From Chara braunii (Eukaryota; Plantae; Charophyceae), in the NCBI GenBank assembly GCA_003427395.1, contig BFEA01000011.1, forward strand, positions 4,980,328-5,044,327: a stretch of DNA of 64,000 nucleotides. The letters are read 5' to 3'. The notes beneath the pieces were generated by a model that had not been told where the DNA came from, made no database searches, and worked only from the letters and a program-made list of their open reading frames with translations. Positions within the stretch are counted from its first letter, which is position 1. Each line of letters begins with the position of its first letter. This document shows, one piece after another, positions 31,323 to 58,926 of this stretch. Both the position numbers and the translations under genes were made by a program.

Positions 31323-31400
31323 GCGGAAGTCTTTGAAAGCCCGGATGATCCGGAGGATGCACCTGACAAGAATCCCGTTTACTGTCAGCCTCAGCCGCAG
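31323..31400 (+). CDS. DCTN2: DCTN2 exon (AEVFESPDDPEDAPDKNPVYCQPQPQ)
   Basis: cag| acceptor after a T-rich tract, CAG|gtagg donor, 78 bp; EVFES matches the p50 N-terminal DVYET motif. Confidence 0.75.
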
Positions 31401-58400: not shown

Positions 58401-58926
58401 TAAGTCGGCCGTCAGAGGGGCAAATCGCAAATAAACGGAAATTTCAGGGGCATTTTGGAACTTTTCCCTTGTTTTTTTTTTTTTTTTTTTTTGTGATGGT
58501 GCTTTGCCAGATTCTAGCAAGTTAGTAGCAAGTACTAGCAACCAAATAGAACTGTTTATGGGGAGGAGGACTCATTTGTTAAATTAATTGACTTATGAAT
58601 GCTGAATTGAAACTCTGAAAGTTGAACCGCAATAAACTTGTTAATAGCCTTCTTGAGTCTGTGACTCTGTGATATTGACCCATATATATATATTGAAACT
58701 AACAATAGTACACATCATATTATCTATGCAGGTGAATAGGATCTTTGAGAAGATGGAGGAGTGTGAGGCAGAAGCATCTCAACTTCCAGAAATTCTGGAG
58801 TTCCTTCAGCTAACCAGCACAATGTATACGAAGAATTTCACTTTGTGTGAACAAGTGGACAGAATCCAGCATGAGCAGAATCATATCGTTAACTCCATCA
58901 GACTTCAGAAGGAGCTTATCCAAAAG
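31323..58926 (+). CDS. DCTN2: Dynactin subunit 2 (p50/dynamitin) homolog, multi-exon, partial at both ends. Exons: 31323-31400, 33968-34058, 40130-40299, 42641-42928, 52074-52214, 56661-56906, 58732-58926
   Basis: The exons join in frame (intron phases 0,1,0,0,0,0) and give motifs collinear with animal p50 as I recall it: EVFESPDDPE (DVYETSDLPE), ASEAFELF (PNAAYDKF), ESPAQRYLRLQSEIQALQEELE ([22 protein letters not shown]), LSKRLLSELE (LAKRLLLQLE), VTYEVYYTP..ELMDLERRITRLEKSV (VTYELHSRP..VAELEKRLTELETAV), KIDMLDPQRLAALDGTL (KVSALDLAVLDQVEARL), KVNRIFEKM..ASQLPEILEFL (KVHQLYETI..ASTLPELVQRL). Confidence 0.88.
33968..34058 (+). CDS. DCTN2: DCTN2 exon (AVFEDEGIDTTGFSASEAFELFSTKSHLLT-G)
   Basis: tttgcag| acceptor, ACAG|gtgc donor, 91 bp; its phase 1 end matches the next exon. 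Confidence 0.75.
34632..34740 (+). repeat. 5'-truncated copy of the hammerhead-bearing repeat
   Basis: AAGAGTCGGTGAAACTCCAACGAAACCGTTTGTCACGG...CTGTTTGACAATATATAA aligns to 51569-51678. Confidence 0.8.
36094..37920 (-). mobile_element. 5'-truncated L1-like LINE (zf-RVT C-terminus, long 3' UTR, polyA)
   Basis: EENHCFLECEKNRTLW...IWAIWKRRCEQTFE; poly(T) on the + strand at 36094-36113. Confidence 0.7.
38100..38870 (+). mobile_element. Decayed LTR-retrotransposon gag fragment
   Basis: LPKFKGKRDEDIDPWL... capsid-like motif near 38655, with in-frame stops. Confidence 0.55.
40130..40299 (+). CDS. DCTN2: DCTN2 exon (GINSRL...ESPAQRYLRLQSEIQALQEELE)
   Basis: catag| acceptor, GAG|gtatg donor; carries the dynamitin ETP-RY-RL-E motif. 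Confidence 0.88.
42006..42103 (+). repeat. 5'-truncated, diverged copy of the hammerhead-bearing repeat
   Basis: AACAGTTTGTCACAGCCC...CCTACGGTTTACCGGGCAACTCTGTTTGAC is nearly identical to 51592-51670. Confidence 0.8.
42641..42928 (+). CDS. DCTN2: DCTN2 exon (CLCSNDEG...HMLSKRLLSELE...DVSKE)
   Basis: In-frame acceptor is taag|, donor GAG|gtgtg, 288 bp; LSKRLL motif. Confidence 0.8.
43730..44080 (-). mobile_element. Ty3/gypsy RT fragment
   Basis: IRICIDY*KLHAITVKNVFPLRRVNGLLD..VFTKFDIRHGFHHVAV..KTVF. Confidence 0.8.
44339..44410 (+). pseudogene. tRNA-like SINE head or tRNA pseudogene
   Basis: TGGCTGTAGTGGTTAAG (A box) and GGTTCGAACCC (B box); stems imperfect. Confidence 0.55.
44681..44753 (-). 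pseudogene. U6: U6 snRNA retrocopy, 5'-truncated
   Basis: ACAGAGAAGATTAGCATGGTCCTGTGCAAGGATGGCGCACATAAATCGTGGTCC plus an A-rich tail; GTGTTGTG on both flanks (TSD-like). Confidence 0.85.
44839..45632. repeat. Diverged tandem duplication, period about 400 bp
   Basis: GATCCTGGC..AGTACAATGCC..AGAATCAATGTC.GAATCCCTC..AGCCATGGCC..GGCCTTGCCC occurs twice. Confidence 0.75.
46614..46656 (-). mobile_element. Ultra-short LINE 3'-end insertion (22 nt plus polyA)
   Basis: 17-bp TSD TGGGCATGATGTGTTCT at 46597-46613 and 46657-46673; insert GCCAGGACCATAAGGCCCTGAT-A(n) matches the LINE end at about 59465-59485. Confidence 0.85.
48380..49480 (-). mobile_element. Decayed L1-like ORF2 fragment (post-RT region)
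   Basis: ITRPAALGGLSIIDP..ALQTKWIIRLL..PW resembles the GGLG..L..KW..R motif of L1 ORF2. Confidence 0.65.
50378..50480 (-). pseudogene. U6: U6 snRNA retrocopy, near full length
   Basis: GTCCTTCGGGAC...GATACAGAGAAGATCAGCATGGCCCCTGCGCAAGGATGACATAAATTGAGAGATGGTCCA followed by CACAC and an A run instead of a T terminator; small deletion near the 3' end. Confidence 0.9.
51547..51596 (+). ncRNA. Type III hammerhead ribozyme
   Basis: CTGT-T / stem I GAGG-GTTCAG-CCTC / core CTGATGA / stem II GTCGG-TGAAACT-CCGAC / GAA-ACAG. All three stems pair and the core is canonical; predicted cleavage after GUU at 51551. Confidence 0.85.
51547..51678 (+). repeat. Hammerhead-bearing repeat, 3' end with (AT)n tail (Penelope-like or retrozyme-like)
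   Basis: About 125-bp segment also present, 5'-truncated, at 34632-34740, 42006-42103 and 35581-35625; all end in TT(T)GAY followed by an AT-rich tail. Confidence 0.75.
52074..52214 (+). CDS. DCTN2: DCTN2 exon (AKKSPAVTYEVYYTP...LERRITRLEKSVGGQFSQ)
   Basis: ctgcag| acceptor, CAG|gtgagt donor, 141 bp; VTYE and LE-R-LE motifs. Confidence 0.9.
53076..54213 (+). mobile_element. Solo LTR, about 1.14 kb
   Basis: TGCAATAAACTCAG...GGGTTCATTACA imperfect inverted termini (TG...CA); it interrupts a palindromic element. Confidence 0.65.
56191..56301. mobile_element. About 110-bp MITE (Tc1/mariner-pogo-like); other copies at 52491-52600, 54454-54564, 33200-33303, partial at 22545-22630 and 30911-30945
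   Basis: TIR CTACCGTCTTCACCCGAATAGAAC / GTTCTATTCGGGTGAAGACGGTAG, shared core GCAACTTTCAGTCCAGATGC, TA flanks on some ends. Confidence 0.8.
56661..56906 (+). CDS. DCTN2: DCTN2 exon (VVPLEW...LEKKIDMLDPQRLAALDGTLENL...ELDEK)
   Basis: Polypyrimidine tract plus gag| acceptor (alternative in-frame ccag| giving a start at 56715), AAG|gtaaa donor. Confidence 0.85.
57212..58468. mobile_element. Mutator-like (MULE) non-autonomous element with long TIRs
   Basis: Roughly 170-bp imperfect TIRs (AAAATGCCCCTGAAATTTCC..CCCTGATTTGCCCC / GGGGCAAATCAGGG..GGAAATTTCAGGGGCATTTTGGAACTTTTCCC); flanked by T runs. Confidence 0.7.
58732..58926 (+). CDS. DCTN2: DCTN2 exon (VNRIFEKMEECEAEASQLPEILEFL...LIQK)
   Basis: atgcag| acceptor, AAG|gtatg donor, 195 bp; matches the p50 C-terminal coiled coil. 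Confidence 0.9.

Follow-up and report, generated by a model that had tools for sequence, protein, structure and literature searches.

A DCTN2 (dynactin p50) gene is expressed in Chara braunii, a streptophyte alga

In animals, the disordered and acidic N-terminal 87 residues of the dynactin subunit p50 (dynamitin, DCTN2) bind Arp1 directly, and the part from residue 100 to the end self-associates and binds p150 and p24 (PMC4091830). The reported pI of the N-terminal p50 region is 4.2-4.4 (PMC4091830). Dynactin subunits have been found only in lineages with dynein-1, and a p50 in a lineage that lacks dynein-1 is not known (PMC3583065). For Viridiplantae, Hammesfahr and Kollmar (2012) listed zero dynactin-specific subunits (PMC3583065). 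The loss of dynein-1 and dynactin is described as dating from the origin of green plants, where kinesin-14 and myosin XI took their place (PMC5100056, PMC3583065, PMC5371999). Kollmar (2016) detected dynein-1 in a glaucophyte (Cyanophora) and a red alga (Chondrus), and inferred that it was lost when Viridiplantae arose (PMC5100056). The initial annotation of the DNA studied here had described dynactin and dynein-1 as generally considered absent from land plants and model green algae, and these surveys bear this out (PMC3583065, PMC5100056).

The nearest archaeplastid lineage with p50 is that of the glaucophytes, for which dynactin2 of Cyanophora paradoxa is listed (PMC3583065, Table 1); under vertical descent, this is the expected orthologue of a p50 in green algae. 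Cyanophora has dynein-1 (PMC5100056), whereas dynein-1 is unreported in Chara. The heavy chains of C. braunii were surveyed by Lucas and Geisler (2022), who reported no dynein-1; dynactin was outside their scope, and their explicit statement of dynein-1 absence names only Chlamydomonas and land plants (PMC9237703).

We analysed a window of 64,000 nucleotides from contig BFEA01000011.1 of C. braunii (GCA_003427395.1), in which a DCTN2 gene lies on the plus strand with exons across positions 31323-58926. Taken together, the Pfam and PDB matches, the RNA data and the identity of the host support the view that the locus carries a genuine DCTN2 orthologue, which is expressed and belongs to the genome of this streptophyte. 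The Chara genome was reportedly published in 2018, after the surveys by Hammesfahr and Kollmar in 2012 and by Kollmar in 2016. A literature search that included supplements found no paper on Chara or charophyte dynactin; the Chara genome paper (Cell 2018) lay outside this search. As far as we checked, Chara p50 is visible in databases but has gone unremarked.

Homology searches were run with single exons or with parts of the public protein record of the gene (P0001, which is GBG60491.1 of C. braunii). P0001 matched the Pfam Dynamitin family (PF04912) with 137.5 bits, against a gathering cut-off of 31.8 bits (E = 9.7e-40; residues 14-397; profile positions 3-370 of 396). After P0001 had been split in three, each third alone scored above the curated cut-off, in profile order, and the N-terminal third covered profile positions 3-112 (E = 3.2e-12). 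Residues 126-268 of P0001 formed one unbroken Dynamitin stretch (profile 132-235) that spans the junction of exons 4 and 5. In single-exon searches, Dynamitin was recovered from exon 3 (profile 64-112, E = 3.9e-06), exon 5 (195-235, E = 1.7e-07) and exon 7 (307-370, E = 0.0031), again collinearly. In the PDB, the only significant matches were to DCTN2 of pig and human (four of four at E < 1e-9, ranging from 1.5e-10 to 8.4e-10), and the next best hit had an E-value of 0.21. The initial annotation had described the protein as collinear with DCTN2 and had proposed the Dynamitin profile as a check; both the profile score and the PDB matches of P0001 agree with that description. ESM Atlas features pointed to Dynamitin clusters at 0.82-0.83, which we treat as a lead only, and the N-terminal part alone gave no match in this atlas. 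The AlphaFold model built from the single sequence was all-helical, at low confidence (pLDDT 47).

Compared with DCTN2 of pig and human (6ZNL, 7Z8M, 9B7J), the Chara protein is collinear over almost the entire profile. The two have in common an acidic N-terminal region, an ETP-like motif and the VTYE motif, and Chara segments align with the human coiled coils C1-C3. With the public first exon, the Chara protein measures about 437 amino acids, versus 401-406 for DCTN2. In contrast, its identity to human DCTN2 is only about 23% (counted by eye), and the FSD motif at human residues 69-71 is not conserved. The Chara gene further differs in its introns, which are 1.8-15 kb long and filled with repeats, and in belonging to a lineage reported to be without dynactin and dynein-1. 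Residues 13-68 have a pI of 4.05 (4.05-4.58 for the N-terminal region), which is weak evidence since the whole protein is also acidic (4.74). Judged from its sequence, Chara p50 appears to keep both the Arp1-binding-type N-terminal region and the helical region.

Six-frame and splice-site scans gave AG acceptors, GT donors, compatible phases and zero stops for exons 1-7, all on the plus strand. None of the exons has a second copy in the window or in a longer locus record (L001), which is identical to the window where the two overlap and reaches 15.5 kb past the window end. Exon 1 (31323-31400), where the Pfam match starts at profile position 3, encodes an acidic N-terminal segment with EVFES (31326), by homology an Arp1-binding-type motif. 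The acidic region continues in exon 2 (33968-34058), which carries AFELF (34019), aligns with DCTN2 residues 50-66 and ends in phase 1; both motifs are present as first described. Exon 3 (40130-40299) holds an ESP motif and putative coiled coil C1, aligning with human residues 97-118. Predicted helices and a variable linker are encoded by exon 4 (42641-42928), which has a predicted AAG acceptor. At 42641-42652, a CAG acceptor 11 nt downstream looks stronger than this AAG but does not keep the frame of exon 3, so that a micro-exon or alternative splicing is possible. The VTYE motif and putative coiled coil C2 are found in exon 5 (52074-52214), the putative region of coiled coil C3 in exon 6 (56715-56906), and predicted C-terminal helices in exon 7 (58732-58926). 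On its own, this seven-exon model has neither a start nor a stop codon.

RNA was examined at positions 51900-57150 in four runs. The donor of exon 5 was confirmed by a GT..AG joint from 52214 to 56715, which was present in RNA contigs from two studies (runs X1 and X11). Since the contigs splice to 56715, we rejected the acceptor at 56661 that had previously been implied for exon 6. The seven in-frame exons without stops of the initial annotation stand, but the length does not: exons 1-7 amount to exactly 403 codons with the acceptor at 56661, and to 385 amino acids with the RNA-supported acceptor. The stretch of exon 7 was present in 18 runs from five studies of one organism, 16 of which we guess to be RNA. 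At most 0.43 of its words occurred in these runs, which is about the value for an exon filling half the stretch. The few raw exon reads in runs X19 and X20 were all oriented as plus-strand RNA in a stranded library, at a depth of about 1 or less. Expression of the p50 gene is low.

One contig of run X1, 1052 nt long, contains part of exon 5, exon 6, 697 letters that lie off the stretch, and then a repeat with 10 mismatches. Exon 7 followed by a terminal exon from L001:60877 predicts that this repeat starts at L001:61381, and the repeat is found there with exactly 10 mismatches; its family has about five copies in 66 kb. The lengths and the place of the repeat, and not the sequence of the 697 letters itself, lead us to infer that the mRNA joins exons 6, 7 and 8 and skips a last intron of 15,232 nt. 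The same arithmetic and repeat match imply that the mRNA bridges the assembly gap at 57891-57950, a CT/GA microsatellite in the intron between exons 6 and 7. A further assembly gap, at 50759-51546, lies in the intron between exons 4 and 5. Here, continuity rests on phase and on Pfam and PDB collinearity, with no bridging RNA seen. By homology this gap needs no exon, because both flanks are in phase 0, the Pfam stretch is unbroken and the linker in Chara exceeds the human linker in length even so; a small in-frame exon could still lie within it.

The terminal exon 8 (L001:60877-60999, plus strand; window +74159, 15 kb past the window end) encodes 40 amino acids and a stop, and is followed by the 3' UTR. 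Searched alone, it had no Pfam or PDB match. We place it by the arithmetic of the RNA contig and by its location right after profile position 370, the last 26 profile positions being unmatched in P0001. The last intron runs from 58927 through 64000 and past the window end. At L001:53000-58400 (approximate limits) it holds a near-complete gypsy gag-pol element, sense to the p50 gene, which explains why the public gene model CBR_g5665 is a fusion.

This public model (GBG60491.1; UniProt A0A388JRR6) is listed either as 'hypothetical protein' or as 'Reverse transcriptase domain-containing protein'. Its residues 13-397 equal exons 1-7 exactly, with the RNA-supported acceptor of exon 6. Unlike the gene described here, however, it splices into the intronic gypsy gag-pol and not into the terminal exon. 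We rejected this fusion, since the RNA contig skips gag-pol. The name of the model hides the Dynamitin domain, although the Pfam match is already recorded in databases. Gene models fused to transposable elements (TEs) can conceal such genes in the Chara annotation.

The 5' end of the gene was less clear. The putative first coding exon of CBR_g5665, located by tblastn of P0001 at 23283-23318 on the plus strand (12 amino acids; donor GAG|GTCAGT), may be wrong. The observed/expected CpG ratio (CpG o/e) peaks at 30501-31000 and not at this exon, and hence the true start may lie at 30501-31000. A motif and donor scan of positions 1-31322 found no convincing first exon. A third large assembly gap (24369-25073; 705 N) falls between this public exon and exon 1 and could hide the true first exon.

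The explanation that we prefer, and rate somewhat above an even chance, is that the gene is a functional, single-copy DCTN2 inherited vertically from the archaeplastid ancestor, and that its protein is still the dynactin shoulder scaffold on the Arp1 filament. By analogy with DCTN2 biology (PMC4091830), the disordered N-terminal part of about 90 residues would bind the Arp1 filament, while the helical part would self-associate and bind p24 and p150. Chara would then retain at least a dynactin core of Arp1, p62/p25 and probably p150, and dynactin would have disappeared from the green lineage on several later occasions instead of at its origin. The intact frame over eight exons, the splicing, the expression and an apparently full p50 architecture support this explanation. 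Vertical descent is further supported by the glaucophytes with p50, and by the glaucophytes and the red alga with dynein-1 (PMC3583065, Table 1; PMC5100056). Conversely, no dynein-1 was reported by the survey in which C. braunii was covered (PMC9237703), expression is low, and vertical inheritance requires several independent losses. Furthermore, our searches found no green homologue. These searches were insensitive: word-index searches with parts of P0001 returned no homologues and missed animal DCTN2 too. A metagenome scan did not find a p50 homologue either.

How much of the system accompanies p50 can be stated with less confidence. A dynein-1 heavy chain in Chara too seems plausible, at a good deal less than even odds. 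We are similarly tentative, and marginally more so, about the fuller reading that Chara keeps a complete dynactin together with cytoplasmic dynein-1, and that broken or TE-fused gene models conceal them. If it does, the system survives in those complex algae that are closest to land plants and was lost several times within Viridiplantae.

Alternatively, p50 may have been inherited vertically and be expressed in an alga that has lost the Arp1 rod, p150 and dynein-1, leaving a relic or a protein repurposed for another scaffold role (e.g. one involving actin, kinesin-14 or, in sperm, the basal apparatus). The missing report of dynein-1 in the survey that covered Chara (PMC9237703), the low identity to human DCTN2 and the loss of the FSD motif would all fit such an orphan protein. 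We nevertheless consider it unlikely, since the match to the profile is almost complete and appears to include the Arp1-binding-type N-terminal region and every coiled coil, and no p50 lineage without dynein-1 is known in PMC3583065. In addition, the Chara annotation is poor enough to conceal partners, as it did with p50 itself. A p50 without dynein-1 would break, for the first time, the rule that dynactin occurs with dynein-1, and it would offer a natural test of whether dynactin can function independently of dynein. Whether dynein-1 and dynactin were kept or p50 stands without dynein-1, an expressed Chara p50 breaks the entry of zero subunits in Viridiplantae.

Intron positions were compared with the exon lengths and boundaries that we take human DCTN2 to have. 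Four of the eight Chara introns match in both position and phase (35|36, 245|246, 308|309 and 373|374), where 0.19 matches were expected; with these assumed boundaries, simulation gave P ~1e-5, or 1e-3 if a slip of one codon is allowed. The matches at 35|36 and 373|374 rest on ungapped extension past the aligned stretch, and that at 245|246 on a one-residue gap. The assumed exon lengths sum to exactly 401 codons plus the stop. They also agree with a published exon boundary after residue 35 in a gene of 16 exons including two micro-exons (PMC3583065), and with the location of His113 in exon 7 (PMC5057358). The apparently shared introns suggest that p50 was passed down as genomic DNA from an ancestor rich in introns, and hence favour vertical inheritance of p50; an old transfer at the DNA level is compatible with them. 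CpG o/e in the exons was 0.40, like that of the surrounding introns, which is consistent with long residence in the genome.

Such a transfer would have brought genomic DNA from an intron-rich eukaryote (a fungus, protist or animal) into Charophyceae long ago, and it would account for a p50 that is isolated in Viridiplantae according to published surveys and for which we found no green homologue. We regard it as improbable. No close donor emerged: in an exhaustive search of 1.84 billion representative proteins with exon 4, the least conserved exon, the single match at E 0.001 or better was P0001, identical over the exon (P0001 126-221). Moreover, the shared introns require a genomic DNA route, one subunit acquired without the rest of its obligate complex is unlikely to be useful, and p50 is present in glaucophytes. 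A decaying pseudogene, contaminant or mis-assembly, as the low expression and the intronic assembly gaps might suggest, is highly improbable given eight exons with canonical splice sites and without stop or frameshift, mRNA of this species from independent studies, a Chara scaffold of 7.28 Mb and introns full of host repeats. On the evidence of the scaffold, the introns and the RNA runs we rejected contamination, as the initial annotation had argued.

Several degenerate snRNA copies, probably retrocopies, lie in and near the p50 gene. Rfam identified a U6 copy at 50384-50480 (minus strand; 76 bits), which is A-tailed and has plant-like ends, a U6atac-like copy at 34760-34888 (plus strand) and a U2 copy at 30985-31085 (minus strand). 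A second U2-like 5' fragment was recognised by eye at about 22755-22800 (plus strand). The plant-type ends noted earlier for several U6 copies are thus present, but on one U6, the other copy being U6atac-like. The introns also contain a short repeat family in both orientations (52490-52563, 54453-54565, 56190-56301 and L001:60148) that is abundant in RNA reads, and a copy of the same family at L001:61381 lies within the 3' UTR of the p50 mRNA. Decayed fragments of gypsy-type reverse transcriptase and protease were found at 43795-43992 (minus strand), 60578-61754 (plus strand) and 12896-13216 (plus strand).
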